Under the pieces are notes generated by a model. It saw only the letters and a program-made list of their open reading frames with translations. It had not been told where the DNA came from and made no database searches. Below are positions 4,993 through 41,067 of a stretch of 64,000 nucleotides of DNA, piece after piece. The stretch comes from Orbicella franksi (Eukaryota), in contig OZ116699.1 of the NCBI GenBank assembly GCA_964199315.1, forward strand, positions 29,946,001-30,010,000, read 5' to 3'. A program made the translations under genes and the position numbers. The stretch's first letter is position 1. Each line of letters starts with the position of its first letter.

Positions 4993-5068
4993 ATGGCGTC
5001 ACTACACTTCTTGCTGGCGCTGTTTCTACAGCTAGCCATTGCTGCTCTTTTCTTTCAACAGAGCAATG
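4993..5068 (+). CDS. Gene A signal-peptide exon
   Basis: [25 protein letters not shown], hydrophobic core, phase-1 donor gtaagt. Confidence 0.8.
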
Positions 5069-17000: not shown

Positions 17001-20000
17001 TTGTTCGGTAAAGATCTCAAACCTTGGCCTTGCCGTATTAACCTCGCCATTGTTTGGACAATAAGGCAAGGCGGTCTCACTCACGGCACGGTTAACAAGT
17101 AGTTATTAATATCGCCGTAATTTGCCCGTTCCTCGTTTGTTATTCTCTTTACTGTAAGGCAAAATTAAATTTGGATTGGCGTATTAAACTTAGTTTAATT
17201 AAGATTAATTAATCAGGCTATTTTACTATTGCTGGAGCTGGAGTTTAATGTTTAGGCGCATAAAAAACGAAAAAGACTGTCCAAGGTATATTACGAACCT
17301 ATTACCTAGAGATGCAGATAACAGGAGTGTCACCAGAGCTGACCGCTATGGAATGTGTAATTTGGTGTGTCCACGTTATAATAGGGAAACTGAAGGGAGG
17401 GGGAGTACTTTTCAAGTTCGTGGGTTTAAGCTTTGGAATGCGATTCACTCGATAAGAAAGACACCGTTGACACCTTTAAAACTGCTCTTAAAAAATACTT
17501 TTTAGCCTAGTTTCTACGCTACGTGTATAAATGTCTTTTCATCAGAGAATTCTGATGTATATACTTTCTCTCATTTCCTAGTATTTTACATTTTTAATTT
17601 ACTGTATTTGTCTTAGTATTATTATTACAGTAGAATCTCTATTAAGCGGCCCCCAATTAAGGGGCCAACTTTTATTTGGCGGCCAGCGGCCAAAGTCCCA
17701 GACAAATTGTCAGCTATACACTGTAATAAAAACATCTATTCAACGGCCACCTCTATTAAGCGGCCGCGGCCAGCTCTTGCCGTCCCAAGCGTGATTTTGT
17801 TTTCTTTTATACCTCTATTAAACGGCCAGGAAGATTTGAAGTTGGACGTTTTTAGCCAAATAAATCTAAAAGAATGACTGTGGAAAAGTAATTGTTTCTT
17901 TGGCTTTTGTTGACGTTATGGACCATATTATAACCATCATTGTTCTACTTTTTCTCCACTTGCATTTGTTTGTACATATATATTTGATAAAGTGAAAACT
18001 GGACCACGCCCAAAGTTGTTTTCGGGTGAACCTCTATTAAACGGCCACCTCTATTAAGCGGCCAGTTGTCTCGTCCCCGAGAGTGGCCGCTTAACAGAGG
18101 TTTGACTGTATTTGTAATTTAGATTGAGGGCCACTGGTTTATCAGTTTTTACTGTTGTGTGCTACCCTCAAAAAATAAAATTGTTACTTTACAGTAATAC
18201 CTACAACAAGACCAACGGGAAGACCTACCACTAGATTAACAGGTAACCATTCCTTATCTTTAATTTTCTTCTTTTATATGAAAGCAACAGGCTAGAATAG
18301 ATACAATGGAAACGAAAAAACCTGTTAAGGTAACGGACAACAGTTCTTCCAATAACCATGTGTTACTGTGGATAATAAGTACTGCTGCTCCTCGTGGTTC
18401 CGGGAGACGTTGAATGAATGACAAACCCGATACGTGTTATCGAACGTCAACTAACAAGTTGTCTCTTAAAAACACTAACATCAACACAAAAAGGAAAAGT
18501 AGGCAGTGGAAATTAATATACATTCTCAGAGTCAGGTACGATCTCTTTGAGTTGTCTTCTCATGGAATAAACTGATTTGGTTGCCTCATATTTCGTTTGA
18601 TTATATGATTAACACAATCCTTGTGACAGTAGATTTTTAGTGCGGAAACATCATGTTCTCTTTGTCTTTGTAAGGTTCACCTGCCCGAAAGATTTCAACT
18701 ACAACTGCAGGAAAGTCCACCACTCCATCTGGCACAGGACGAGTTACCACACCAGGAGTTATTACGAATATAGGTTGGTTACTTCAAAAATCAAACTTTG
18801 CATAAGTTGGATAAAAGCAATAGCATTAGGTTTAAGTTATGTGAATTTCGTCGTTTGACCAGCTCAAAGTCTTTACACCCTTTATTCATTTCTATGCAGA
18901 TCCTCTCACGTGTTTGTTTCTTTAAAATTTCTTATTTCCATGGAAAATTCAACGGCATACATATATCTTATGAATATACTTTAAAGATATTTTGACATCT
19001 TTATTGTATTTTACGAGTTCTTTATCTTTAACCATATATCGATCAGTGGTACATGTATGACTACATTAGAGTGTTGGTTGCTCTTGGGAATACAAGGCAA
19101 GAAAGTTTCCTGAAACAAAATCGGAAGAGGACTCTAACACCTTCTCTGAGGAGTGGGAAGATTAAATTCTATTTATATGCAGGCCATAGAAAGCCCATAC
19201 AGTATTTGAAGCCATGGTATTGTAAAATTGAGTATAATAAAAGTTAATTAGAAGTCAGTTAAAAGTTAAATCCTGTTTTCGTTTCAGACGGATTCAGAAT
19301 AGAAGTTGTGGAGTACATCAACCGATTCCGACGACTCCACGGCGCAGGCCCGCTTATCCTCTCGACTCGCATTTCCATAGCCGCTCAGAACTGGGCGCAA
19401 ACGTTGCTCAGTCGTGGCACCACGTCGATAGATCCGAACACGAGTTACGGCACGAATGTCTTCTCAAAGGTTGGTGCTCGAACGGGATTGGCTCAAACGT
19501 CTGTGGTCACATGGTACACTTCAGTGAAGCATTATGACTGGGCGAGACGACAGTTAAAAGTTCTCGCGTTGCCTTTCATTCACCTTATATGGCTCTCAAG
19601 TAACTTTGTAGGCGTTGGATTGACCAGGTCGCGAACTGCAAAGTTTTTTGTTGTGGTGTACTTTGACCCAATGCCGGGAAATAAACCACCATCTTTACTG
19701 AAAGACAACGTTCTACCATACACAGGTACATTCACAAAATAAGTCAAAGTAACTCTAGTAAAACGGACCTGAATGTCTCAAAGATGACTTTTTTTATCAT
19801 AGCTCTTGACATGTCTTGCGTATTATTCTTATCCTCTTACTTTTTTTTTATGTTCTGCTTAAGTTAAAGCGTTTTCAAGATTTACATTCCTTTAATTGAC
19901 TAGTCACTATGTAATCCTGTTAGTTAATTATATTCTTCAATTCCCTTTTATTAATTAGTCAACAAGACGTAATCGAGGACATTTTATAATGAGATTTGCT

Positions 20001-23000
20001 TTCTCTGATCTAACTACCTTACGTTTTGAATTTTTTTAGATGTGTTCATCCTGCTGCAGAATGGTGAGTCATTTTTTTATATTTCTTATGTTTTATATTT
20101 TCGTAATGCATCCGTAGAGTTGCTGAATGGCACCCGGCTTATTAATCGTTATTCTCCAACATGACATTTGGCAAAATTGTAATTATCTAGTCGCATTCGT
20201 CTTCTGTTCTATTCACAACATTTGTTTGATTATTTACAGTATCCTCATTTAGCACAGCACTGATGATAAATATTCTGACCCAGTGAATTATTTATTTTAT
20301 TTCATTTTCTCTGTAAATTAAATTAAATCAAATTAGCCTGGCTCTAGAGAGCGGTCTTCATATGAGTGTCCAATAGCGATTGGTTTTGCATCAACTACGC
20401 TACACGATTGGCTTAAAAAAAACTCGCGCCACTATGTCATCCAATCAAAAGTAAAACCAAAACCCATTGTGACTCGCTCGCACTCTTTTCCCCGCGTTTC
20501 ACGTCAGCTATATGAAATTACTTCGAGTTTTGATTGGTTAACTGTATTCTTGTCTGTGTCCTTTGAAATTGGTTTTGGTTTGACGACACTCAATTGTAAA
20601 CCGCTCTATATATACAAGACTGAGACGTTGTTTAACACTGTGCTGTTTATTTAATAGCCATAGTGTCTTGCAACCCTGGCTATACGAATGAAGACGGCAC
20701 TTGTTACAAGTATCACTCAGACACGCAGAATTGGGACGGAGCATTGTTCCAGAGCGCAAAGGAAAACGCTACCTTGATATCGTTTCACAAGACATCAGAG
20801 GAAACTTTCGTACAGAAACTGGTCCCTACAGGAAAAACAGGTTTAATTTGGACAGGCCTGAACGATCTGATTACTGAGGGAACTTATACTTGGTCTGACG
20901 GCACCAGCGTCGAATACACCAGCTGGAAAGTAAACGAACCAACTGGATCAAAAGAGGATTGTGTTTGCATTGAAATGTCCAGTTACGGCACCATGTCCGA
21001 TGCTCCATGTACTGAGCCTCATAATTACATTTCAAGGCAACCACTTGAAGGTGAGGGCTTCACTTTAAGATTATTGATAGTTTTTGACATTTTTTATAAT
21101 AGGAAAAAAGATATTTTCTTGTAGTGACCACTGTTCGTACGAAGTGGAATGCTATTTGATCGGACTGGGAAACGTGATCGTTTCCTTTTTTTCCCTTTTT
21201 AATTTTAAACTGCATACTCAAAAGAAAAAGATCTCAATGTTTACTAGTCGTTAAACATACCATGGGATGAAATCGCTTATGAATATAGTTTACAACCTGA
21301 TGATCCATCCTCGCCATTCCTAATATTAATACTTGCGAATAAACACGAAAACGATGACCAAGACAGATTTACAGCTAAGACAAGTATGAACTAAAGCAAT
21401 AATTTTCATTCACGAAAACGTTGTCTTCTTTTGAAAAAAAACATTTCAGGTCTCATAACATATCGAGTGAAACTTCAGCTGGTTTTCTTACTGTGGACAG
21501 ATGACTATAGCCAAACGACCACACTATCGTATATGGAGCTGAAACAAAAGATAGAAATACTGGTAGGCATATAGTGCCGTAAATGGATAATTGATTCCCT
21601 TTATATAACCGCAGCGTTACAAATTCCCTCAACATAATGTATTGAGTGTGCACCCCAAGACATTGTGGACCTTTTAGGGATAATGTAAACAAAAGACCAG
21701 CCAACTTCAGAAGTGGTATTCTTGAGCCCCGGGACCACCTCTTGACCACCTGGTCACTCCTCCTCCTGGTGCAGTTAATAAAATTTATCCCTAAGCCTGA
21801 GTACCTTACTAGCTAGGCTGACGCAATCATTATCTAACTCTGGTTCTCGTTACACGTAACCATAACTTTGTTGCATTTCTTTCGTTGCAATTGTATCTTA
21901 CAGGAAAAAAACAAAAAAACAAAAAAAACAATAGAAGAACAATAGCCAGGGCTTGATTGCTTGACCCATCGGCTTTATCATGATCATCATGCATCATACA
22001 ACATGAAGGGCTTCAAAGAACGTTCAAACTTTCTAGATGGACAATGTCGATATAATAGATATTTCCTATTTTTATGTTTATTATTTATCTTTTTTACAAT
22101 CTTCTTTTCAGCTGTTGGAAATTTTTAAAATCGACACTACTTTTGTATCGGGATACGTCGAAGAGTTCACGTAAGTAACAGTTCAAGCCGCAATATTACT
22201 GAATTGAATAATTTTCAAAGCGAATCTGTTCAATAATGGTGATGTTTATAAATAATATATTATTTCTTATTGGAAATTTAAAAAATAGTAAAAGTACGAA
22301 GCCATCCCCTCAAACGACAACCAAACCAACAAAGCCCGGAATAACGACACCTGGTTCCCAGACCACCACATCGTCTGTCTCCGTTGCAACTGGCAGACCA
22401 ACTGGCAAACCAACGACCAGACCAACACTGTTTTCACCAGGAACCACGCAGGCCACAACTCCGGCTTCAAAGCCAACTTCGAGTGGGACCTCTAAGTAGG
22501 TTGCTATTTAGTTTTTGTCAGCCAATTAAACGATTATTATGCTACAAATCGAAGGCTGCTCGAGTATGTACGATTTTGAATTGTCATTAGGTGTGCAAAC
22601 AACAGAACGACAAACCGACTGACCAACGAATAGACAGACGCGCAGGCTGAACGACAAACAGATGATACAGACAGCCTTCTTCATCAACTGCTTTATCTCT
22701 CGGTAATTTGTATTTGTCATGGTGAAATAATGGTGCCTTATAACTTGCCTTATAACTTGCCTTATGACACTCTCAGCGTGGTCGTCTAGCCAAATGGCAT
22801 TTCGGCAACTGAATGAGCAGGATCATATAATGATCAGTGATACGACTCAATTTGTCATCGAAATGTGAGATGCAAAACTAGCATAAATTGGAGACGTTTA
22901 CAATCCATATTCTCTCCCTACTTCACTACAAACTGTCTCAGTGGAAGTCATTGTTTCTTTAAAGCCCGCTACTGGTTAAGTATCTTTTTTGCTCGAATTC

Positions 23001-23777
23001 GCCAGTGTGAAGCCCACAGTAACGGTGTCAACCATTCTGAAGTTTGGTCCTGGTGTAGCTCCTGACCCAACTAAGCCACTTCAAGACCATTTGAGGAAGA
23101 ACCTTGGGCGACTTTCAGCTCCTTTAAATCAGAAATCGCTTATTCAGTCTGTTAGGATAGTGCATCCAGGTATGGATTTTACTTTACATTTTCTACATAG
23201 ATATCGTTACTGCAAAATGATAGGTTTTGCATTCGCGATCGTTGACGTGGTTCTCATTATTTCCTAAGATGTTTATGTAAACACGTTAACACAATGCCTT
23301 TCAGATCATGACTGTCTGTAATAGCGATTTAACTCTTGATCTACCAGAAGTGGGCGGCAAGGGAAGAGTTCAGTGAAGGCTTTCTATTTTGAGAAAGGGG
23401 ACCGGGATTTTTGACGACGCTATCAAAATAATTTTGCAGAAGCAGGTGTATTTTGCATATAAGAAAATGTCTTTCTTACTTTAAGTCTAAGGCAAGTGTT
23501 GTTCGTTGCAGGCGTTCCACCAGCCGTATTGGGAACTTGCACCTCAAGCTGCCTCACAACCTGCGTCGTGTCTTGCAACCCATTCTGTTGTAACTCTAAA
23601 AAAAAGTATTTGAATCGGATGGCTATACAACCACCAAGACCTGTACAGCTACCGTGTATCCCTAGTGCTGACAACATTTGTCCGCCTCAGATGAATCCCC
23701 CTGTAAAGGCAACGAAAGTAACAGATCCTCCACAGCATATAATTCATCTGCCACCTCCGCAGATGCAACCACCATGA
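4993..23777 (+). CDS. Gene A: secreted SP-VWA-LamG-EGF-CAP-CTLD-SEA-CRD protein, C-terminally truncated duplicate of gene B (~1039 aa, 14 exons)
   Basis: Exons 4993-5068, 5463-6038, 6349-6812, 8247-8424, 8840-8959, 18195-18242, 19288-19725, 20040-20063, 20664-21050, 21450-21562, 22112-22170, 22289-22495, 23006-23169, 23512-23777. All introns GT-AG with compatible phases; 3120 nt, no internal stop. Confidence 0.75.
5463..6038 (+). CDS. Gene A von Willebrand factor A domain exon
   Basis: [12 protein letters not shown] (MIDAS DxSxS), [23 protein letters not shown]; phase 1-1. Confidence 0.92.
6349..8424 (+). CDS. Gene A LamG/concanavalin-A-like (pentraxin-type) domain, exons 6349-6812 and 8247-8424
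   Basis: [54 protein letters not shown]. Confidence 0.8.
8467..8763. mobile_element. MITE (attattccacgagcg...gatccagtttttaata); duplicate near 31115-31410
   Basis: Intronic and non-coding, with internal inverted segments (gagatggttgatagcc / ggctataaccatctc). Confidence 0.5.
8840..8959 (+). CDS. Gene A EGF-like domain exon
   Basis: [38 protein letters not shown]; six-Cys EGF spacing, phase 1-1. This frame is not in the ORF track. Confidence 0.9.
9280..11958 (+). pseudogene. LINE ORF2, 5' part: apurinic endonuclease and reverse transcriptase
   Basis: APE motifs LNARSL, ITETWL, RGGGV, YRPPS, GDFN, SDH. RT motifs [40 protein letters not shown]. Frameshift near 10430, in-frame TGA at 11165, frameshift near 11497. 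Confidence 0.92.
11959..11993 (+). repeat. 5' LTR, internally deleted to 35 bp
   Basis: TGTTA fused to the last ~30 bp of the 3' LTR sequence (one mismatch). Confidence 0.85.
11996..12013 (+). promoter_or_regulatory. Primer-binding site complementary to the 3' end of tRNA-Ser
   Basis: TGGCGACGAGGATGGGAT is the reverse complement of ATCCCATCCTCGTCGCCA, the 3' end of eukaryotic tRNA-Ser(GCU) as I recall it; starts 2 nt after the LTR. Confidence 0.8.
12091..15423 (+). CDS. Gypsy gag-pol polyprotein (gag with two Zn knuckles, protease, RT, RNase H, integrase N-part)
   Basis: [78 protein letters not shown]. The frame breaks after FTSETFMQ. Confidence 0.93.
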   Translation: MPDEAPNTSQTIGKVTKYVVGTDWESYTEQLDFCFLANGVGDAKTKKAVRLTNLPVETYQLAKDLVAPAQLKDEAITYDVIVERMKKQLKPERSALVARYEFDNRARNSGESVSHYVATLKHLATECKFGEAVRTERLRDRLVSGIRDPKMITDLLKVKLADLTFELAVQKCLAIEQANKDVQVLQGEQGPDIPVNKLDTAQPREGQAPPKLPQKTQGSRGKDTKPPKPCYRCTGSHKSQKCPFIKERCFHCGIIGHTQRACKKKQATQQVTVAGVNVMEGADSEESDGEYGELYHVSDSKNRKPISLEVYLEGRPVIMELDTGSAVSVVSEGVYKEYLRHVPLKDTPLKLRTYTGESVKPMRFCYVTVQYKGQSKELPIYVMKNEGPTLFGREWLESIQLDWPLLQLETSDTNPALEEVLNKHTSVFSDGLGRMKKIQARVQLKESARPRFWKARPVALARKPAVEEALRELEAEGVIKKVTTSEWAAPIVTPVKKDGSVRVCGDFKVTINPQLDVDEYPLPRIDDIYANLGGGTLFSVIDLRHAYLQMEVEEQSRPFLTINTTRGLYQYQRLPYGVASAPAIWQRAMDQVLEGLPGVFCYLDDIIVTGSTMEEHLERLVAVLKRLEEYGLKANREKCKLLRSFVEYLGHVISAEGLHQSPKKVKAITEMPTPQDVTQLRAFLGMVQYYARFLPDLATHLAPLHRLLQKEVKWSWGAEEEASFRVVKEMLLQDKVLVHYDPDLPLVLATDSSSYGLGAVLSHRTPEGEERPIAYASRSLSETEKKYSQIEKEALSLVWGVKKFQTYLEGRHFTLVTDHQPLKYIMDPGKAVPVTAAARIQRWCLFVGAFAYSIEFRGTKQHANCDGLSRLPQPRAPVDKPDEVEMFHTTVVEALPVTEQELRMQTRRDPVLSRVLELVQWGWQEAEVHPELIPYAHRASKITIHHGVLMWGSRVVVPTKLRERVLETLHEGHIGMVKMKGLSRGYVWWPNIDKDIEGAVRNCEGCQETANNPARAPLHRWEYPALPWQRLHVDFAGPFQGKMLMVAIHAHSKWPKIFVLENTTAEEAVSVLRSLFARMGLPDQIVSDNGPQFTSETFMQPLILALHNSC
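15404..15923 (+). pseudogene. Integrase C-terminal remainder in a shifted frame
   Basis: [47 protein letters not shown]. The core segment carrying the third DDE residue is deleted near 15390. Confidence 0.85.
16046..16060 (+). promoter_or_regulatory. Polypurine tract
   Basis: aaaaggggaggaaac immediately before the 3' LTR. Confidence 0.8.
16061..16213 (+). repeat. 3' LTR, 153 bp
   Basis: TGTT...AACA termini, internal AATAAA, followed by the TSD. Confidence 0.9.
16219..16721 (+). pseudogene. LINE ORF2, 3' part resumed after the Gypsy insertion
   Basis: RANRVLG|LVKRTC is rejoined across the insertion; [27 protein letters not shown]. Confidence 0.9.
17248..18190 (+). mobile_element. 3' fragment of an L2/Crack-type LINE interrupted by a MITE; duplicate near 32187-33130
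   Basis: Remnant [21 protein letters not shown], then an AT-rich 3' UTR ending aataaaattgttact. Confidence 0.6.
17628..18108. mobile_element. Tc1/mariner-type MITE (TA-CAGT...ACTG-TA); duplicate at 32567-33047
   Basis: TA target duplication, CAGTAGAATCTCT / AGAGGTTTGACTG TIRs, repeated cctctattaa(g/a)cggcc motifs. Confidence 0.75.
19288..19725 (+). CDS. Gene A CAP/SCP (GAPR1-like) domain exon, degenerate
   Basis: [51 protein letters not shown]. Confidence 0.85.
20664..21050 (+). CDS. Gene A C-type lectin domain exon
   Basis: [35 protein letters not shown]; phase 1-1. Confidence 0.9.
21450..23169 (+). CDS. Gene A SEA-like domain split by a Ser/Thr-rich exon (exons 21450-21562, 22112-22170, 22289-22495, 23006-23169)
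   Basis: [46 protein letters not shown] [ST-rich insert] VTVSTILKF. Matches the SEA pattern and the exon sizes of gene C. Confidence 0.65.
23512..23777 (+). CDS. Gene A terminal exon: minicollagen-type CRD plus shortened Pro-rich segment
   Basis: [18 protein letters not shown] at 23538-23591. In-frame deletion relative to gene B. TGA at 23775-23777. Confidence 0.75.
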
Positions 23778-27497: not shown

Positions 27498-30400
27498 ATG
27501 GCGTCACTACACTTCTTGCTGTTTCTGCAGCTAGCCATTGCTGCTCTTTTCTTTCAACAGAGCAATGGTAAGTTCTCAAAAGATTCTAGAACCTTTCTGC
27601 AAAAGAACGAGAACAACAATGTTCAAGAATGGTTATTCAACCCAGGGTCCTTCTGGATACCAACCATGATGTTGAATGGGCCACCCTAGCTAAATAAAGG
27701 TTTTTCTCACTTACAGTTACCCAGTAAAACGAAAATAACGAATACGGTAGTTCATAAATAGCTGTGTCTCAATGGATAATGCTTATGGAGAAAAGTGAGT
27801 CACTCTTTTGCTTGCAGTATGATGTTCAGTCTACTCTCCTTATTGTTTTAATTAATAGTTACTCAAAAGAACTATTTCATACCATCCAACCGATCTAATC
27901 GTTGAAAATAGATTCGAACTTAGATAAAGACTTTCAACATCAATTAACTTTATTTTAACAGGAGCCTTCTGTAGACGATCGGTTGATATTGCCTTTGCAA
28001 TAGATGCCTCGGGCAGTGTGGGAAGTTGGGGATATTACCAAGAAAAGACCTTTGTACGCAATACCATCGCCAGATTCGGAATCTCGCGCTCAGGCACGCA
28101 CGCCGCGGTCATAGTTTACAGCACGGGTGCGCAGGTCGCGATATCGCTCACTCAGTACACCAGCTACTCGAGATTCTACTATGCCGTACAACGAATTCCT
28201 TACACTAGAGGACTGACAAGGATTGATTTAGCACTGAAAGTGGCAGCCGAACAAGTGTTTTCGGAAGATGGCGGTGTACGGAGTAATGTACCCAAAATAC
28301 TGGTGCTGATGACGGACGGTTTTCAAACTCGTACCAGGGATTCCTTACCGCTTGACAAGGCGGTGCTGCCTTTGAAAGCTCAAGGCGTGCAAGTGTACGC
28401 TTTGGCTATAGGGCAATACACCAAAGAATATGAATTGAGGTTAATCGTGGAGAAGTCATCACATATTTTTCGATCCAGCAGGTTTAGTGGTCTAAAGAGA
28501 GTGATAGGAAGATTGGCAGTAACCACATGTAGAAATGGTGAGTATGTACTGCAGTAAAAATCAAACCGTTCATGATTAATTTTCTGTCTTCTGACACGTG
28601 CGCTATTGAGATTAGTTACAAATTCATCACATGCTAGCTCGCACTTCGTTTTTTTTTTCTCAAACCGTTTACTTTTAACAAATTGTTTATATCGCTCCTT
28701 GTTTCTGGATCGTTGCCATAGTTCTTCCCATACTTATTTAATTCAAATCTCAAATGCAAAAGACCAAAAAAGTAAAATATTCCTATGTTAGTTAAATCCG
28801 TTTTAGTTACGACGAGATTAACGCCAATTTTTTTTCTTCCAACTTACAGCTCTCCCTGTGGCATTTGCGATCTATCCACTGAACACGCAAACCCGGGGAA
28901 GGGACATCAGCGCACGAAGAGCCCCCACGGGGTATTTAAGTTCAGTAACCAGTGCAATGGGGCCGTATGGGAGACCTGGGGGATCTTTTTATCTACAAGG
29001 AACACCCAACAGCTACATCGACTTCCCTAATTCAGCTACAGGAAAACTTGACACGTGGACGTCAATTTCTATATTTTTATGGGTTTATCCCGAGGAAAAA
29101 CCCGGCCCGATCGTCAACTATCGAAAAAGCGGGCACGGTCTTGGTCTTTGGCTGTCAGGCACGCGTGTGCTTGAGGGTCGTGTTTACAGTCGTCGAAGTT
29201 ACTACAGAAGAAAACTGCACTTTACTCATTTCGTGCCAAGAAGATGGTATTATGTGGGTCTCATATACGATAACACCCACGGATATGCAACCTTGTGGGT
29301 CAACGGACGGGTGGTAGGATGATTTCCATTGTACATATTTGAACAATGTATAAATATCATTAATAACTCCCTATTTAAACTATGGTTCATGTGCATGAGG
29401 TTACTGCTCCCAAACACATTTAAAACGATAGCTAGTGTGACAAAAACGCGCATTGCGCTTAATTTTCTTCGCGAGAACACCAGAGAACAGGCAGTTCCCG
29501 TATTTCTTAAGGCCAATTGCCTTCCAGTGTTATTCTTGTTTTTCCACCAGTTTTACTACTTGATGTATGATGAGCACAAAAAAAGCCTGGATTAAATTAA
29601 ATTCAGTACAATGCATAACTAACTATAACACCAGATCATCCACGAATAAGCGCTTCTATGTAAAATTTTCAAGAACAGAGGAAACGATAAAATCCTTTAA
29701 AAGGATATCCTTTATGCATCAGATAAGCAAATTTTACCCCAAGCTTCGCTATTAAGGCGGGACGTAACCTAAAATTCTGAAAGAAATTCGAAGTTTTGTT
29801 ATTCACGGAACTCGAACCTTAAGGTATTGAAATATTATTTTGACAAGTACCGTTACTTTAAGTTTAAAGCTCGTTTTCTCAAAACGAGTTATTTTCGCCT
29901 TCGAGAAAAGATATCTTGAGAAGGATTTATTCAATTGAGCTAAAATTTTCAGGATTTGTTGTTCTTAGTGCGTTCTGTGGGATAAGCATAGAACTTTTCC
30001 ATGCAGTGCATTCTGTCGAAGTTATGTATTGAAACGTATGCTAGATTTTCTGTGAGATTTAACTGGTCATCACTTCGTGCATTTTTAACTTTTCAAAAAT
30101 CTCTATGCTTATCCCAGGAAGCTATTTGTTTTCTTTTATAAAATGTAAAAAATTATTCCTTTTGATCAGTTCTTGTAGGAGTTATCTTTTCTCAAGTAAG
30201 CCCTGGCATTCCTCAGCAGGTGGCAATATTAATCAGCGGGTGTCAGGTTACAATACAGTTATAGGGTACAGAAATACTTTTTCCATAATTTTTGGTCTTT
30301 AAGCTTTTTAAAAATGTATACTTTGCCATGGTTTGGAGTTAAATCTTAGCCGCGAGAAAGTGTTTAAAACATGGTGTTGTTTCAAGTCCCACCTTAAAAT

Positions 30401-33400
30401 GCAAATTAAAAATTGTGTCCTGGACAAATTCAGAAAGCAGCAAAGATGAAAAGAATACCCTCGTGAAAACAACGCAATGGTGCCTGAGGTTTGAGAAAAT
30501 TTCTCGTAAACGAGGCTTGGTGGTGAAGTTTAAGCATGTGACGTAATCGTGCATAAGACTTATTCACTGGTAATTAAGCTTTAATTAAAACGTCATAATA
30601 AAGCGAATTCAAAACAAGGAAAGCTAGAGTGGGGATTACATCCGGAGGGGCTTATAACCGGATGTATTTTTTGGTTTAGCGGTAGATGGGTTCATAAGCG
30701 GGGGCCTTATAAGTGGGGCGGGGGGGGGGGGGAAGGGCTTATAGGCGACAGTTTACGGAGTTTATTAACAATAGGTTTAGAGACAGACAAAAATTACTTT
30801 ACGAGATTATCTGAATACTAACTAGTAGCTCTGATTTTCAAAGAATTCCAGCAAGTTTTGACATTTTCTTTTGCATTTATTTGATGTTTCAGGTTTTTCG
30901 CACAAGAATGAGCCGAATACACCTGGCTACCCAGCATTCCATTCGAATGGGTGCCGTGAGTGGTGTTAATCAGTATTTTAGAGGTCGGGTCACGTGCCTG
31001 CAAATATATGGAATGATGTTGACCTCCAATCAGATAGCGACCATAAAGAAGAAGTGTGCTGCTAGGGACCGTAAGTGGCTTAATGTAATCTCTATGCAAT
31101 CAGTGTATTTAACAATTATTCCACGAGCGTGCGTTAGATAAGAGATGGTTGATAGCCGACGAGGCGGGAAGCATCGAGTTGGCTATAACCATCTCATATC
31201 CAACAAGAGTGAGTGGAATAATTTTTTTAATTAAAAACGCCCCTAAAATGTAGAAACAAATTAAAATAAAAATAAAAGCGCCCCAAGGAATCACGCGTAC
31301 GCTAACCATTTGTGTAGAGCAAGGTATAATGGCTCATATACCATGCTGGCTAAGCCATTGAAAACTCTTGAACTGCATTATCCAATGATCCAGTTTTTAA
31401 TATAATAATGTATTGTTAAATTGCATTCCTTTGAGTAACCATTTTCTCTTCCTCTTATATCAAGACTTTTTTTTGTATAATTTCAGAGAAAGATCCTTGT
31501 CTTTCCAGCCCATGTAAAAATGGCGGAAGCTGTATCGTCGCTTCAAAAGATAAAACTGGTTATCGTTGTCGCTGTAAACCTGGTTATCGTGGGCATAGAT
31601 GTGAAGGTAATAAATAAATAAATCAATGAATCAATCAATAAATAAATAAACAAATAAATTTTAATTCGTTTTCTCTGTCACTTCTGGTTAAAGAAATTAT
31701 CCTTGTGGCTGCTGAAAAAAAAGCAGCCTGCTAATTGCAATTGCAAGGATAGTATTAATCACTTTAAACTCTCTATCCGCTGTCCATTACTTATTATGTG
31801 GCTTGTGTTTGTAGCCGATATAACGTGCGCTCTGATTAGCCAATTCTAGAGCATTTTTCTCTCGTGATGTCCACGAGCCGATAACGGGCCTGCAAAAGCA
31901 AAGCAAAAAGCCATATAACAAACAACTTGTTAACCTCGATTGTTCGGTAAAGATCTCAATCCTTGGCCTTGCCGTATTGACCTCGCTATTGTTTGGGCAA
32001 TAAGGCAAGGCGGTCTCACTCACGGTACGGTTAACAAGTAGTTATTAATATCGCCGTAATTTGCCCGTTCCTCGTTTGTTATTCTCTTTACTGTAAGGCA
32101 AAATTAAATTTGGATTGGCGTATTAAACTTAGTTTAATTAAGATTAATTTATCAGGCTATTTTACTATTGCTGGAGCTGGAGTTTAATATTTAGGCGCAT
32201 AAAAAACGAAAAAGACTGTCCAAGGTATATTACGAACCTATTACCTAGAAATGCAGATAACAGGAGTGTCACCAGAGCTAACCGCTATGGAATGTGTAAT
32301 TTGGTGTGTCCACGTTATAATAGGGAAACTGAAGGGAGGGGGAGTACTTTTCAAGTTCGTGGGTTTAAGCTTTGGAATGCGATTCACTCGATAAGAAAGA
32401 CACCGTTGACGCCTTTAAAACTGCTCTTAAAAAATACTTTTTAGCCTAGTTTCTACGCTACGTGTATAAATGTCTTTTCATCAGAGAATTCTGATGTATA
32501 TACTTTCTCTCATTTTCTAGTATTTTACATTTTTAATTTGCTGTATTTGTCTTAGTATTATTATTACAATAGAATCTCTATTAAGCGCCCCCCTATTAAG
32601 GGGCTAACTTTTATTTGGCGGCCAGCGGCCAAAGTCCCAGACAAATTGTCAGCTATACACTGTAATAAAAACCTCTAGTCAACGGCCACCTCTATTAAGC
32701 GGGCGACCAGCTCTTGCCGTCCCAAGCGTGATTTTGTTTTCTTCTATACCTCTATTAAACGGCCAGGAAGATTTGAAGTAGGACATTTTTAGCCAGATAA
32801 ATCTAAAAGTATGACAATGTGGAAAAGTGATCGTTTCTTTGGCTTTTGTTGAAGTTATGGACCGTATTATAACCATCATTGTTCTACTTTTTCTCCACTT
32901 GCATTTGTTTGTACTTATATATTTGATAAAGTGAAAACTGAACCACGCCCAAAGTTGTTTTCGGGTGAACGTCTATTAAACGGCCACCTCTATTAAGCGG
33001 CCAGTTGTCTCGTCCCCGAGAGTGGCCGCTTAACAGAGGTTTGACTGTATTTGTAATTTAGATTGAGGGCCACTGGTTTATCAGTTTTTACTGTCGTGTG
33101 CTACCCTCAAAAAATAAAAATTGTTACTTTACAGGAATACCTACAACAAGACCAACGGGAAGACCTACCACTAGATTAACAGGTAACCATTCCTTATCTT
33201 TAATTTTCTTCTTTTATATGAAAGCAACAGGCTAGAATAGATACAATGGAAACGAAAAAACCTGTTAAGGTAACGGACAACAGTTCTTCCAATAACCATG
33301 TGTTACTGTGGATAATAAGTACTGCTGCTCCTCGTGGTTCCGGGAGACGTTGAATGAATGACAAACCCGATACGTGTTATCGAACGTCAACTAACAAGTT

Positions 33401-36400
33401 ATGTCTCTAAAAAACAGTAACATCAACACAAAAAGGAAAAGTAGGCAGTGGAAATTAATATACATTCTCAGAGTCAGGCACGATCTCTTTGAGTTGTCTT
33501 CTCATGGAATAAACTGATTTGGTTGCCTCATATTTCGTTTGATTGTATGATTAACACAATTCTTGTGACAGTAGATTTTTAGTGCGGAAACATCATGTTC
33601 TCTTTGTCTTTGTAAGGTCCAACTGTCCGAAGCGTTCCATCTACACCTGCAGGAAAGTCCACCACTCCATCTGGCACGGGACGAGTTACCACACCAAGAG
33701 TTATTACGAATATAGGTTGGTTACTTCAAAAATCAAACTTTGCATAAGTTGGATAAAAGCAATAGCATTAGGTTTAAGTTATGTGAATTTCGTCGTTTGA
33801 CCAGCTCAAAGTCTTGACACCCTTTATTCATTTCTCTCACGTGTTTGTTTCTTTAAAATTTCTTATTTCCATGGAAAATTCAACGGCATACATATATCTT
33901 ATGAATATACTTTAAAGATATTTTAACATCTTTATTGTATTTTACGAGTTCTTTATCTTTTAACCATATATCGATCAGTGGTACATGTATGACTACATTA
34001 GAGTGTTGGTTGCTCTTGGGAATACAAGGCAAGAAAGTTTCCTGAAACAAAATCGGAAGAGGACTCTAACACCTTCTCTGAGGAGTGGGAAGATTAAATT
34101 CTATTTATATGCAGGCCATAGAAAGCCGATACAGTATTTGAAGCCATGGTATTGTAAAATTGAGTATAATAAAAGTTAATTAGAAGTCAGTTAAAAGTTA
34201 AATCCTGTTTTCGTTTCAGACGGATTCAGAATAGAAGTTGTGGAGTACATCAACCGATTCCGACGACTCCACGGCGCAGGCCCGCTTATCCTCTCGACTC
34301 GCATTTCCATAGCCGCTCAGAACTGGGCGCAAACGTTGCTCAGTCGTGGCACCACGTCGATAGATCCGAACACGAGTTACGGCACGAATGTCTTCTCAAA
34401 GGTTGGTGCTCGAACGGGATTGGCTCAAACGTCTGTGGTCACATGGTACACTTCAGTGAAGCATTATGACTGGGCGAGACGACAGTTAAAAGTTCTCGCG
34501 TTGCCTTTCATTCACCTTATATGGCTCTCAAATAATTTTGTAGGCGTTGGATTGACCAGGTCGCCAACTGCAAAGTTTTTTGTTGTGGTGTACTTTGACC
34601 CAATGCCGGGAAATAAACCACCATCTTTACTGAAAGACAACGTTCTACCATACACAGGTACATTCACAAAATAAGTCAAAGTAACTCTAGTAAAACGGAC
34701 CTGAATGTCTCAAAGATGACTTTTTTTATCATAGCTCTTGACATGTCTTGCGTATTATTCTTATCCTCTTATTTTTTTTTTTGTTCTGCTTAAATTAAAG
34801 CGTTTTCAAGATTTACATTCCTTTAAGTGCTAGTCACTATGTAATCCTGTTAGTTAATTATATTCTTCAATTCCCTTTTATTAATTAGTCAACAAGACGT
34901 AATCGAGGACATTTTATAATGAGATTTGCTTTCTTTGATCTAACTACCTTACGTTTTGAATTTTTTTAGATGTGTTCATCCTGCTGCAGAGTGGTGAGTC
35001 ATTTTTTTATATTTCTTATATTTTATATTTTCGTAATGCATCCGTAGAGTTGCTGAATGGCACCTGGCTTAATAATCTTTATTCTCCAACATGAAATTTG
35101 GCAAAATTGTAATTATCTAGGCGCATTCGTCTTCTGTTCTATTCACAACATTTGTTTGATTATTTACAGTATCCTCATTTAGCACAGCACTGATGATAAA
35201 TATTCTGACCCAGTGAATTATTTATTTTATGTCATTTTCTCTGCAAATTAAATTAAATCAAATTAGCCTGGCTCTAGAGAGCGGTCTTCATATGAGTGTC
35301 CAATAGCGATTGGTTTTGCATCAACTACGCTACAAGATTGGCTTAAAAAAAAACTCGCGCCACTATGTCATCCAATCAAAAGTAAAACCAAAACCCATTG
35401 TGACTCGCTCGCACTCTTTTCCCCGCGTTTCACGTCAGCTATATGCAATTACTTCGAGTTTTGATTGGTTAACTGTATTCTTGTCTGTGTCCTTTGAAAT
35501 TGGTTTTGGTTTGACGACACTCAATTGTAAACCGCTCTATACATACAAGACTGAGACGTTGTTTAACACTGTGCTGTTTATTTAATAGCCATAGTGTCTT
35601 GCAACCCTGGCTATACGAATGAAGACGGCACTTGTTACAAGTATCACTCAGACAAGCAGAATTGGGACGGAGCATTGTTCCAGAGCGCAAAGGAAAACGC
35701 TACCTTGATATCGTTTCACAAGACATCAGAGGAAACTTTCGTACAGAAACTGGTCCCTACAGGAAAAACAGGTTTAATTTGGACAGGCCTGAACGATCTG
35801 ATTACTGAGGGAACTTATACTTGGTCTGACGGCACCAGCGTCGAATACACCAGCTGGAAAGTAAACGAACCAACTGGATCAAAAGAGGATTGTGTTTGCA
35901 TTGAAATGTCCAGTTACGGCACCATGTCCGATGCTCCATGTACTGAGCCTCATACTTACATTTCAAGGCAACCACTTGAAGGTGAGGGCTTCACTTCAAG
36001 ATTATTGATAATTTTTGAGATAGATTTTTTATAATAGGAACAAACATATTTTCTTGTAGTGACCACCGTTCGTACGAAGTGGAATGCTTTTTGATCGGAC
36101 TGGGAAACGTAATCGTTTCCTTTCTTTCCCTTTTTTTTAAACTGCATACACAAAAGAAAAAGATCTCAATGAATGAATGATATATGTTTGCCAGTCGTTA
36201 AACATATCATGGGATGAAATCGCTTATCCATATAGTTTACAACCTGATGATCCATCCTCGCCCTTCCTAAAATTAATACTTGCAAATAAACACGAAAGAT
36301 ACCAAGACAGATTTACAGCTAATAACAAAGACAAGACAAAAAGACAAGTATGAACTAAAGCAATAATTTTCATTCACGAAATCGTTGTCTTCGTTTGAAA

Positions 36401-39400
36401 AAACATTTCAGGTCTCATAACATACCGAGTGAAACTTCAGCTAGTTTCCTTACTATGGACAGATGACTATAGCCAAACGACCACACTATCGTATATGGAG
36501 CTGAAACAAAAGATAGAAACACTGGTAGGCATATAGTGCCGTAAATGAATAATTGATTCCCTTTACATAACCGCAGCTAGCTAGCGTTACAAATTACCTC
36601 AACATAATGTATTGCGCACCCCAAGACATTGTGGACCTTTTAGGGATAATGTAAACAAAAGACCAGCCAACTTCAGAAGTGGCATTCTTGAGACCCGGGA
36701 CGCCCCTCCCCCCCCCCCCCCCTCCCCTTGACCACCTGGTCACTCCGGCTCCTCCTCCTGGTGCAGTTAATAAAATTTATCCCTAAGCCTGAGTACCTTA
36801 CCAGCTAGGCTGACGCAATCATTATCTAGCTCTGGTTTTCGTTACACGTAACCATAACTTTGTTGCATTTCTTTCGTTGCAATTGTATCTTCCAAGAAAA
36901 AAAAAAAACAATACAAGAACAATAGCCAGGGCTTGATTGCTTGACCCATCGGCTTTATCATGATCATCATGCATCATACAACATGAAGGGCTGCAAAGAA
37001 CGTTCAAACTTTCTAGATGGACAGTGTCGATATAGCAAATATTTCCTATTTGTATGTATATTATTTATCTTTTTTACAATCTTCTTTTCAGCTGTTGGAA
37101 ATTTTTAAAATCGACACTACATTTGTATCGGGATACGTCGAAGAGTTCACGTAAGTAACAGTTCAAGCCGCAATATTACTGAATTGAATAATTTTCAAAG
37201 CGAATCTGTTCAATAATGGTGATGTTTACAAATAATATATTATTTCTTATTTGAAACTTAAAAAATAGTAAAAGTACGAAGCCATCCCCTCAAACATCAA
37301 CCAAACCAACAAAGCCCGGAATAACGACACTTGGTTCCCAGACCACCACATCGTCTGTCTCCGTTGCAACTGGCAGACCAACGACCAGACCAACACTGTT
37401 TTCACCAGGAACCACGCAGGCCACAACTCCGGCTTCAAAGCCAACTTCGAGTGGGACCTCCAAGTAGGTTGCTATTTAGTTTTTGTCAGCCAATTAAACG
37501 ATTATCATGCTACAAATTGAAGGCTGCTCAAGCATGTACGATTTTGTATTGTCATTAGGTGTGCAAACAACAGAACGACAAACCGACTGACCAACGAATA
37601 GACAGACGCGCAGGCTGAACGACAAACAGATGACATAGACAGCCTTCTTCATCAACTGCTTTATCTCTCGGTAATTTGTATTTGTCATGGTGAAATAATG
37701 GTGCCTTATAACTTGCCTTATAACTTGCTTTATGACACTCTCAGCGTGGTCGTCGAGCCAAATGGCATTTCGGCAACTGAATGAGCAGGATCATATAATG
37801 ATCAGTGATACGACTCAATTTGTCATCAAAATGTGAGATGCAAAACTAGCATAAATTGCAGACGTTTACAATCCATATTCTCTCCCTACTTCACTACAAA
37901 TTGTCTCAGTGGAAGTCATTGTTTCTTTAAAGACCGCTACTCGTTAAGTATCTTTTTTGCTCGAATTCGCCAGTGTGAAGCCCACAGTAACAGTGTCAAC
38001 CATTCTGAAGTTTGGTCCTGGTGTAGCTCCTGACCCAACTAAGCCACTTCAAGACCATTTGAGGAAGAACCTTGGGCGACTTTCAGCTCCTTTAAATCAA
38101 AAATCGCTTATTCAGTCTGTTAGGATAGTGCATCCAGGTATGGATTTTACTTTACATTTTCTACATAGATATTATTACTGTAAAATGATAGGTTTTGCAT
38201 TCGCGATCGTTGACGTGATTCTCATTATTTCCTAAGATGTTTATGTAAACACGTTAACACAAAGCCTTTGAGATCATGACTGTCTGTAATAGCGATTTAA
38301 CTCTTGATCTACCAGAAGTGGGCGGCAAGGAAGAGTTCAGTGAAGGCTCTCTATTTTGAGAAAGGTGACCGGGAGTTTTGGCGATGCTATCAAAATAATT
38401 TTGCAAAAGCAGGTGTATTTTGCATATATATAAGAAAATGTCTTTCTTACTTTAAGTCTAAGGCAAGTGTTGCTCGTTGCAGGCGTCCCACCAGCCGTCT
38501 TGGGAACTTGCACCTCAAGCTGCCTCACAACCTGCGTCGTGTCTTGCAACCCATTCTGTTGTAACTCAAAGATAGTCGCTGCCAATAACGTCCAATACAC
38601 CGGCATGCGACATGCAGTGATAGCCCAGGCAGCCCCTAAAGGATCGATTCTTCCTCGTTTGTTTAAGTACCCAATGAGCCCACAAGTTAACATGTTTGCT
38701 GCGCAAACTGTAGCTCCACAAGCCCGGCCTGTAGCTGTGCCAGTAACTCTGTCCGTGAGATGTGTTCCAACCCTACAGAGACCTTGTCCACCTGGAACTC
38801 AAGCTGCCCAAACGATACGGGGATCTTATAAAATGCCTCAGCCGGGAATTCCCCGGAGAATCTTTCAGCCGCAGCCACGTCCAGTACTTGTCCAGCCACT
38901 GGTGTTGCCTGGAGCTCCTGTTCTCACGCCAAAGTATTTGAATCGGATGGCTATACAACCACCAAGACCTGTACAGCTACCGTGTATCCCTAGTGCTTAC
39001 AACATTTGTCCGCCTCAGATGAATCCCCCTGTAAAGGCAACGAAAGTAACAGATCCTCCACAGCATATAATTCATCTGCCACCTCCGCAGATGCAACCGC
39101 CATGTATTCCTAGCCTTTACAATCCTTGTCCACCTCTCATGAGTCCCCCTGTTAAATATAAGACGACAAAAGTAACAGACCCACCACAACATATAATTCA
39201 TATGCCACCTCCGCAGATGCAACCACCATGTATTCCTAGCCTTTACAATCCTTGTCCACCTCTCATGAGTCCCCCTGTTAAATATAAGACGACAAAAGTA
39301 ACAGACCCACCACAACATATAATTCATCTGCCACCTCCGCAGATGCAACCACCATGTATTCCTAGCCTTTACAATCCTTGTCCACCTCTCATGAGTCCCC

Positions 39401-41067
39401 CTGTTAAATATAAGACGACAAAAGTAACAGACCCACCACAACATATAATTCATCTGCCACCTCCTCAGATGCAACCACCATGTATTTCTGGCGCTTACAA
39501 TCCCTGTCCACCTCTCATGAGTCCCCGTGTTAAATATAAGACGAGAAAGATAACAGATCCACCACAGCATATAATTCATCTGCCACCTCTTCAGACGCAG
39601 CCACCATGTATTCCTAGTGCTTACGAGCCTTGTCCACCAGCGATAAATCCTCCTACCCAGACTACAAAAGTAGTGGACCCACCACAACACGTAATACATC
39701 TGCCACCCGCACCACCCGCACCTCCACCACCTTCATCAAATTTCTTTCCCATGCCATTATCTGTTCCTGTACTGTGCATTCCTCGCCCTTTCTATCCTTG
39801 CCCGCCAACGGCTGGAGCAAGAAAGCTTTCGAAACCCTCGCATATGAAAGGGAAGTCTCGAGCTGTCATGCCTAAACCAATTGTAGGTTCCTATCCAGTT
39901 CCTTATGGAAAACAACCATATTGGCAGCCTCCAGTTGCATTATATACCCCGTTTGCCCCACCAGTGATGCCTCTTTCCCTATTGCAGCGACCAGCGCAAT
40001 ACACACCAAATATGTATGGCTATCGTACTCCGTTTCAAGGGTATCGCCCTCCTGTATGGCCACAGGTTATGAGAAGGCCCCTGGTGATGTCCCCTTGGGT
40101 TCCAATGCCTCAGCGCCAGTATCCTCCTGTCATGAAACCAGTTCTAGATGACAAGCCAAAACAGAAACCACCTAGACCTATTCCAGCCAAAGGGCCCATT
40201 TCTCTAAAAGGCTCTATTTTAGTGTATCCGAAGCCAGTACCAGCTATTCCTCCTTCTCCTCCGGCTGCGGGTCCATGTATTCCTACTATAAATAATCCCT
40301 GTCTTCCCTCTCGTCCGTATCCTATGGGACAAAACACTTTCTCCATGATGAAACCCTGCATCCCTTCCGTAGCGAATCCCTGTCTTCCAAACACAGGAAA
40401 CATACCAACAAAGCCCCCAACAAAACCAGACGAGAGTGAGGCAAAACCTATCCTGTTAACAAGGCCACTGCAGGTGCAAGGGAGTGTATATTTCAATTTT
40501 CGCCCACCTCCTCAAGGATCAGCTGCCCCTTCCTCCGCCCCAGTGCCATGTGTTCCAACTGCGACTACGCCGTGTTCACCATTAATGCCACCACGTCAAC
40601 CTTTTATGCCACCAAGCTACGTTGCCTCGAAGGTCCTAAATCCTTTCTCTAACCTAATGACTCCCAAAGTACCTCAGCCAGCTATTGGGGGTGTTGTTCC
40701 TGCCCTTGTCAACCCGAATGTACCAAAGATTCCTCCTGCAGCTCCACATTCAATTATTGTTCAGCTTCCTGAAATTTCCCTTCAGGCAGCCCCAGCATCG
40801 TCTCTTCCACGGCCTTTCATTCCTCCCCAGCCGTATACACCAGTCTTTCCAAGCAATTGCCCCGTGTCATGTACTCACTTTCCAGGTGTTTTCTGTCCAC
40901 CATATTGCGCAAGTTACTGTTGTAAAAACAGAGGTGGAAACCGAAAGAATACTAAGAAGAAAACAGAAAAGAAAAAGAAGGAAGTTAAAAAAGGAGGAAA
41001 GGGGACAAAAAAGAAAACTAAAAAGCAAAAGAGCATTTTGAAAGTGAAGAAAACTAAAAAGGGGTAA
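27498..41067 (+). CDS. Gene B: full-length secreted NOWA-like protein SP-VWA-LamG-EGF-CAP-CTLD-SEA-CRD-Pro-rich-CRD-Lys tail (~1806 aa, 14 exons)
   Basis: Exons 27498-27567, 27962-28537, 28850-29313, 30893-31070, 31487-31606, 33135-33182, 34220-34657, 34970-34993, 35595-35981, 36412-36524, 37092-37150, 37269-37463, 37974-38137, 38483-41067. GT-AG with compatible phases, 5421 nt open. Confidence 0.8.
27962..28537 (+). CDS. Gene B VWA domain exon
   Basis: Intact DASGS/T/DG MIDAS motif. Confidence 0.92.
28850..31070 (+). CDS. Gene B LamG/ConA-like domain (exons 28850-29313, 30893-31070)
   Basis: Paralogous to the gene A exons. Confidence 0.8.
31487..31606 (+). CDS. Gene B EGF exon
   Basis: Identical by eye to 8840-8959. 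Confidence 0.9.
34220..34657 (+). CDS. Gene B CAP/SCP domain exon
   Basis: As in gene A, two amino-acid differences. Confidence 0.85.
35595..35981 (+). CDS. Gene B C-type lectin exon
   Basis: As in gene A, two amino-acid differences. Confidence 0.9.
38483..41067 (+). CDS. Gene B terminal exon: N-CRD, Pro-rich region with 11 C-x7-C motifs, variant C-CRD, Lys-rich tail
   Basis: 860-codon open frame; [18 protein letters not shown] (38509-38562), [22 protein letters not shown] (40858-40923). Confidence 0.9.
38981..39720 (+). repeat. Coding tandem repeat, 126-bp (42-aa) period, about 6 units
   Basis: catgtatt recurs at 39101, 39227, 39353, 39479, 39605; unit [42 protein letters not shown]. Confidence 0.95.

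Follow-up and report, generated by a model that had tools for sequence, protein, structure and literature searches.

A coral gene model that joins a VWA-LamG-EGF cassette to a NOWA-like CAP, lectin and Cys-rich core

The DNA analysed here, referred to as the window, is a gap-free 64-kb stretch (64,000 nucleotides) of the Orbicella franksi contig OZ116699.1, AT-rich with ~39% G+C. It carries three related genes, named A, B and C, and the middle one, gene B, is the subject of this report. Gene B exons were built from stop-free stretches with Pfam matches together with AG/GT boundaries. Fifteen exons on the + strand between 27498 and 41067, with AG/GT splice sites, are joined into one open reading frame (ORF) of 1841 amino acids (aa) with a single terminal stop; a mosaic protein of ~1800 aa had been proposed in the initial annotation. 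The modules follow in the order signal peptide, VWA, LamG_3 (two exons), EGF, two Pro/Thr linker exons, CAP, microexon, C-type lectin (CTLD), SEA with a mucin insert, and Pro-rich tail. Gene B is likely to be a single coral protein-coding gene for a secreted mosaic of 1841 residues, in which the CAP-CTLD-Cys-rich part would be the counterpart of NOWA-type cnidocyst proteins and the VWA-LamG-EGF cassette would have been acquired before the coral lineages split.

Gene B was compared with the related coral loci L004, L005/L006 (upstream extension L011), L007-L009 and L010; the contigs P0002 and P0005 (1-2 kb) were too short for gene order. Two protein models of the coral Montipora in RefSeq, P0183 and P0184, were also used. 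The exons of gene B, with the intron phases at their two ends, are listed below.

27498..27567, + strand: exon 1, start codon and 24-aa signal peptide; phase 0 to 1; ATG, hydrophobic core and GTAAGT donor
27962..28537, + strand: exon 2, VWA with MIDAS (metal-ion-dependent adhesion site) residues; phase 1-1; Pfam PF00092, E 4.9e-34; boundaries kept in four loci
28850..29313, + strand: exon 3, LamG_3 (ConA-like, pentraxin-like) part 1; phase 1-0; Pfam PF13385, E 9.9e-06
30893..31070, + strand: exon 4, LamG_3 part 2; phase 0-1; a piece of Pfam PF13385
31487..31606, + strand: exon 5, EGF; phase 1-1; Pfam PF00008, E 2.7e-08; donor phase kept in five loci
33135..33182, + strand: exon 6, Pro/Thr/Gly-rich linker PT1; phase 1-1; without ATG; acceptor and donor positions conserved
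33617..33715, + strand: exon 7, second Pro/Thr linker PT1b, probably a cassette exon; phase 1-1; tblastn match in L010 (70% identity, E 3.6e-10) and also in L004
34220..34657, + strand: exon 8, CAP/SCP; phase 1-1; PF00188, E 1.6e-12, 48.7 bits (cut-off 21.1); 76-86% identity in orthologous loci
34970..34993, + strand: exon 9, microexon of 24 nucleotides (nt); phase 1-1; its residues are in both RefSeq models and gene C has an equivalent
35589..35981, + strand: exon 10, CTLD; phase 1-1; PF00059, E 3.7e-15, 57 bits (cut-off 22.6); 70-78% identity in orthologous loci
36412..36524, + strand: exon 11, SEA part 1; phase 1-0; splice sites kept in five loci
37092..37150, + strand: exon 12, SEA part 2; phase 0-2; tblastx conservation in L005, L007 and L010
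37269..37463, + strand: exon 13, mucin-like Ser/Thr/Pro exon within SEA; phase 2-2; in the M. capricornis model
37974..38137, + strand: exon 14, SEA part 3; phase 2-1; 74-83% identity in orthologous loci
38483..41067, + strand: exon 15, 861-aa tail to the stop; phase 1 to stop; orthologous single-exon ORFs 44-86% identical

The coordinates and phases given in the initial annotation for the VWA, EGF, linker, CAP, microexon and CTLD exons (all 1-1) and for the LamG pair (1-0-1) were each found to be correct. The second linker exon (1-1) and the four SEA/mucin exons (not 1-1) are additions to it. Ten of the 14 introns are in phase 1 (binomial P ~0.004 for an expectation of one third). Such a phase-1 bias, with symmetric phase-1 exons, is usual for modular extracellular proteins of animals. 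Splicing of the mucin exon straight to the CTLD exon or to the first SEA exon was tried and gave a phase mismatch, which was resolved by the extra exon at 37092-37150 found with tblastx. Upstream of the start codon, a pyrimidine run followed by CAG resembles a splice acceptor 6-7 nt 5' of the ATG, both in the window (27480-27500) and in L011 (1680-1702); this arrangement suggests an untranslated first exon further upstream.

The MIDAS of the VWA domain had been called intact, and the complete set can be read in the sequence: D-A-S-G-S for the DxSxS motif, the Thr of G-L-T-R-I-D and the Asp of M-T-D-G. Metal binding is predicted only. The same residues are kept in L010, and the Montipora models, which start within the VWA domain, show the Thr and the Asp only. 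The two LamG_3 exon pieces, scored singly, reached 26.2 and 13.8 bits, just under the PF13385 cut-off of 27.6, and the contiguous domain in the orthologues P0183 and P0184 scored 39.4 and 36.8 bits, over that cut-off. Likewise SEA (PF01390, cut-off 26.4) was detected at 30.6 bits in P0183 and 27.6 bits in P0184, the copy of gene B being split by the mucin exon; the canonical G/SVVV cleavage motif is not visible in the SEA domain of gene B. The CAP domain of gene B has no cysteine at all, which is odd for a family named after cysteine-rich secretory proteins.

The tail encoded by exon 15 contains 24% Pro and has a Lys-rich C-terminal end. A Cys-rich domain of the form C-x3-C-x3-C-x3-C-x3-CC that flanks a Pro-rich region is a hallmark of minicollagen and NOWA proteins. 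A canonical copy of this domain is present at residues 990-1007, at the start of the tail, and a second one, with its second loop enlarged to seven residues, is at residues 1773-1794. The two are ~765 residues apart, and between them lie 11 C-x7-C pairs in a Pro-rich context; the tail has 12 C-x7-C matches altogether, the last one within the C-terminal Cys-rich domain. Nowhere in the 1841 residues do four or more Gly-X-Y triplets follow one another.

Exon order was compared among the coral loci, as the initial annotation had suggested for orthologues in other corals, and the same order, strand and phases were found in five loci. The VWA, LamG1, LamG2, EGF, linker, CAP and CTLD exons are collinear and on one strand in all five, as are the SEA exons and the tail where the stretch reaches that far. 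Protein identity of gene B exons to these loci is 62-86%, and the splice phases are equal at conserved junctions. The L010 exons join into one ORF of 1731 aa, although the start of the CTLD exon as modelled there probably hides a microexon. For gene B against L010, the ratio of nonsynonymous to synonymous change (dN/dS, omega) is 0.19 for VWA, 0.17 for LamG1, 0.20 for LamG2 and 0.08 for EGF. Because these values of 0.08-0.20 were obtained at a dS of ~1, the cassette exons are regarded as constrained coding sequence under purifying selection.

Two adjacent genes could give the same order of exons. A VWA-LamG-EGF gene would then end after the EGF exon, a separate CAP-CTLD-SEA-Cys-rich gene would have its own promoter, and the match of phases would be a coincidence. 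In L011, a partial upstream copy made of LamG2, EGF and linker indicates that a cassette-only unit can exist as DNA. On the other hand, a start is seen at one end only. In gene B, L004, L007 and L010, the VWA exon is preceded by a homologous signal exon of 70 nt whose donor is in phase 1; a conserved ATG exon of signal-like sequence, again with a phase-1 donor, was not found between EGF and CAP in the five loci, although the downstream domains are all extracellular. The few weak ATG-exon candidates seen in this interval in gene B, L004 and L007 are not shared among the loci, and L010 and L005 have none. The protein of gene B has no Met in the part encoded from the EGF exon onwards until shortly before the CAP exon ends. 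The two linker exons, both without ATG, are themselves conserved, and their length changes preserve the frame, which also argues against a gene boundary. PT1 measures 48, 60, 72, 129 and 144 nt in the five loci, lengths that are all divisible by three, with the phase-1 frame open in each; PT1b measures 90-102 nt and is 70% identical between gene B and L010. In L011 the signal exon is 69 nt long, not 70, and would be out of phase with the VWA exon.

Models that join both parts of the gene are present in RefSeq for two Montipora species, a further point against two genes. With a longer orthologous tail ORF as query, XP_068712220.1 (Montipora foliosa, 1691 aa) and XP_068743568.1 (Montipora capricornis, 1719 aa) were found, each annotated as "uncharacterized protein". 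Both contain VWA, Laminin_G_3, EGF, CAP, Lectin_C and SEA, and their junctions match those of gene B, including the microexon and the path from EGF through the linker to CAP. The linker translated from L007 is the linker of these models. The second linker exon is missing from the M. capricornis model and the mucin exon from the M. foliosa model; as both of these exons are symmetric (1-1 and 2-2), they may plausibly be alternatively spliced cassettes.

Some observations weigh against a single gene. Both RefSeq models are automatic and start inside the VWA domain without a signal exon, so that the full N-terminus is unconfirmed by them; at the Montipora-type locus L007, by contrast, both a signal exon and an intact VWA exon are present. 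When the CAP exon and the last exon were used as homology queries, only intron-flanked ORF calls from genomic DNA were returned and no junction-spanning transcript fragments. Close matches to single exons of gene B are ORF calls on genomic contigs which read into introns. Directly after the EGF donor, at 31607-31625 in gene B and 8960-8978 in gene A, lies GTAATAAATAAATAAA, with three AATAAA motifs that overlap and a stop in frame three codons past the donor.

The stop and the AATAAA run can be taken in favour of two genes, and also in favour of one gene with two products, in which intronic polyadenylation after EGF would yield an additional short secreted VWA-LamG-EGF protein in the window species. 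Their presence in both A and B fits such a short product. The stop and the AATAAA run were, however, absent from L004, L005, L007 and L010 and present only in the copies A and B, and AATAAA often arises by chance in AT-rich introns. The short isoform is accordingly judged quite unlikely as an addition to the full-length product, and the division into two genes highly improbable. The scenario that the initial annotation had set against its own model, with transcripts that end after EGF and CAP exons that use a start of their own, finds no support either, with no start exon from EGF to CAP and the poly(A) signals unconserved. From the comparison of loci and the two independent RefSeq models, the VWA-LamG-EGF exons and the CAP-CTLD-Cys-rich core very probably belong to one gene.

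Gene B is flanked by a recent and an older relative. The features of the neighbouring genes are the following.

4993..23777, + strand: gene A, tandem duplicate of gene B; 95.5% identity to B; 14 upstream exons intact; ORF of 1074 aa
45336..52531, + strand: gene C, older paralogue; splice-modelled up to the CTLD; SEA, mucin and Cys/Pro-rich tail known as open stretches
45336-45393, + strand: gene C signal exon, 58 nt
46829-47056, + strand: gene C acidic exon, phase 1-1, between the signal and CAP exons
47288-47716, + strand: gene C CAP exon, phase 1-1
48165-48188, + strand: gene C microexon of 24 nt, phase 1-1

The ORF of gene A stops at a TGA (23775-23777) where the similarity to gene B ends, and its last exon is truncated. 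The tail of gene A also has an in-frame deletion relative to B and retains the first Cys-rich domain only. Judged from this structure, the product of gene A could act as a chain terminator, or gene A could be on its way to decay. The EGF-to-linker intron of gene A contains nested LINE (long interspersed nuclear element) and LTR (long terminal repeat) elements at 9262-16958, and the same intron is 7.7 kb shorter in gene B. At 9151-16721, a non-LTR retrotransposon with endonuclease and reverse-transcriptase ORFs is split by a Ty3/gypsy-like LTR element, which carries a gag-pol ORF of 1119 aa. A breakpoint within a related gene is seen in L011, where the partial upstream copy (200-1770) ends ~50 nt short of the next full copy's signal exon, which places the duplication breakpoint just past the linker exon.

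The dN/dS values between A and B (cassette 0.49, core 0.30) rest on too few changes to be informative. The second linker exon (18675-18773 in A, 33617-33715 in B) has 10 nonsynonymous changes and one synonymous change, clustered at its 5' end, and the CAP and CTLD exons have 2-3 changes each. This pattern suggests that the second linker may be under relaxed or diversifying evolution.

Gene C is related to gene B at the protein level only: the proteins are ~33% identical, and blastn of B against C showed no DNA similarity. Its CTLD exon is again in phase 1-1, and its CAP-microexon-CTLD structure is the same as that of B. The initial annotation had described a single acidic phase 1-1 exon in gene C, located at 46829-47056 between signal and CAP, and exon modelling bears this out. 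At the end of the window (62001-64000), GC skew is strongly negative, resembling that of the exons for the Pro-rich tails in B and C, which hints that another Pro-rich coding exon may lie there on the + strand.

The difference between genes B and C falls at one and the same phase-1 intron, the one that follows the signal exon: there B carries the VWA-LamG-EGF cassette and C the acidic exon. Placement of the cassette by phase-1 exon shuffling, with a swappable N-terminus, had been put forward in the initial annotation. The core structure common to B and C and the promiscuity of this LamG type agree with that proposal; a fusion of a neighbouring VWA-LamG-EGF gene with the core would look alike. 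The LamG type of gene B has 429 relatives at E <=0.001, and its partners include EGF, CTLD, F5/8-C, PAN, WSC and VWA. CAP is not among the 25 commonest of the 49 partner families counted in 29 long LamG relatives. When the first LamG exon was searched against 1.84 billion cluster representatives, the close matches were short genomic ORF calls only, and the Montipora RefSeq proteins were missed. No donor gene for the cassette was found among the LamG relatives, a point against the preferred account of its origin.

Fusion would require that an upstream VWA-LamG-EGF gene lost its 3' end and that a NOWA-like gene lost its first exon, exon 1 of gene B then being derived from the VWA gene. The signal exons of B and C, 70 and 58 nt long, are without similarity, and the locus is prone to tandem duplication with intragenic breakpoints, both of which fit such an event. 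The dissimilarity of the signal exons says little, however, because signal peptides diverge fast, and no free-standing VWA-LamG-EGF gene was present among 150 LamG relatives. Fusion is therefore considered somewhat unlikely as the route. The cassette was most likely gained through one of these two routes, exon shuffling or fusion with a gene upstream, and before the sampled corals diverged.

A wider proposal can be made tentatively for the phase-1 intron after the signal exon. It may be a docking slot, at which B carries a metal-dependent adhesive head and C an acidic head on one cross-linking tail, with the symmetric cassette exons alternatively spliced. This proposal is rather doubtful at present. 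If true, different cnidocyst types or capsule layers would obtain different surface chemistries from one scaffold family.

As to function, gene B is moderately favoured as coding for a structural protein of the cnidocyst that is cross-linked by way of its Cys-rich domains. This role is taken as the best reading because gene B shares the CAP, CTLD and Cys-rich domains with NOWA and sits in a tandem cluster. According to the proposed mechanism, the product would be secreted into the cnidocyst vesicle, where disulfide exchange at the terminal Cys-rich domains would cross-link it to minicollagens as well as to itself. The lectin, VWA, LamG and EGF domains may contribute glycan and protein binding. 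The cassette sits in the phase-1 intron between the signal and CAP exons, the slot taken by the acidic exon in paralogue C. The terms 'adhesive' and 'disulfide-polymerising' for the two parts of the protein are inferred from domain identity.

A role outside the cnidocyst was also considered, in which gene B would encode a general extracellular matrix, mucus or skeletal-matrix protein with minicollagen-like Cys-rich motifs. VWA, LamG, EGF, SEA and mucin modules are typical of such proteins, and CLEC18 of vertebrates pairs CAP with a C-type lectin domain without any role in cnidocysts. A matrix protein of this kind is nevertheless unlikely to be what the gene encodes. Genes A and C share the Cys-rich pattern, and NOWA genes appear to be neighbours in Nematostella too. 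Moreover, the pattern, where it bounds a Pro-rich region, is regarded as the minicollagen/NOWA hallmark (see also PMC10014300).

Within the preferred assignment to cnidocysts, gene B lacks one trait of NOWA, the tandem Cys-rich array, and one trait of minicollagens, the collagen repeats. Owing to these two absences, it is filed as a NOWA-like variant and not as a strict member of either family.

The domain string had not been recognised from any named protein in the initial annotation, and this holds for named proteins and for the large Atlas clusters; the string is present in RefSeq as unnamed automatic models. Atlas cluster searches returned no cluster with the full string, and a literature search found no paper describing it. 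As the string is already in RefSeq, unnamed, and the mechanism of phase-1 exon shuffling is textbook, gene B serves as a case study, and no new principle follows from it. The model of gene B supplies a name and a complete N-terminus for the 5'-truncated 'uncharacterized' RefSeq entries.

A small set of cross-linking proteins, specific to cnidarians, makes up the cnidocysts, and the locus bears on how this protein set diversified into many capsule types. One 64-kb stretch holds three NOWA-like paralogues with differing N-terminal modules at one intron position, a recent truncating duplication, and linker exons that are resized in frame. With such a locus, module swapping on a common polymerising core becomes testable.

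Among known systems, vertebrate CLEC18 has CAP and C-type lectin domains in one secreted protein and is the nearest named Atlas cluster to the core (score 0.80), a lead only. It is without minicollagen Cys-rich domains, SEA or VWA/LamG, and nothing indicates that the combination goes back to a common ancestor. Minicollagens resemble gene B in that N- and C-terminal Cys-rich domains flank a Pro-rich region, and the C-x3-C-x3-C-x3-C-x3-CC form is present in gene B. They have Gly-X-Y repeats, whereas gene B has none, and the tail of gene B is far longer, with ~980 residues joined to it that form globular domains.

Hydra NOWA (nematocyst outer wall antigen) has an SCP/CAP domain that precedes the lectin domain. 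Its likeness to gene B lies in secretion and in the succession of CAP, C-type lectin and, C-terminally, minicollagen-type Cys-rich domains. Two differences detract from the assignment of gene B to the NOWA type. Hydra NOWA is without VWA, LamG, EGF and SEA, and gene B adds the cassette, the linkers, and SEA with its mucin insert. Moreover, Hydra NOWA has eight tandem Cys-rich domains, whereas gene B has two, one of them loop-expanded, at the ends of the 861-aa tail. The Hydra protein, a C-type lectin that carries eight minicollagen Cys-rich domains C-terminally, assembles into oligomers linked by disulfides, and its role is now placed in tubule invagination (PMC10014300, which describes the work of Engel et al. 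2002).

In Nematostella, NOWA-1 to NOWA-4 form a Cnidaria-specific lectin family with several paralogues. Expression of the four NOWAs differs by cnidocyte type, and cnidocyte-specific vWFA proteins also exist (PMC12549020). NOWA-2, -3, -4 and a 'NOWA-related' gene have consecutive numbers, NV2.10388-10392 (PMC12549020), which suggests that NOWA genes are neighbours there, as A, B and C are here. Within the corals, the orthologous Montipora RefSeq models have the same architecture, exon by exon, from VWA to the C-terminal Cys-rich domain, and at the orthologous Montipora-type locus L007 the exons that encode domains are ~63-76% identical to their counterparts in gene B.

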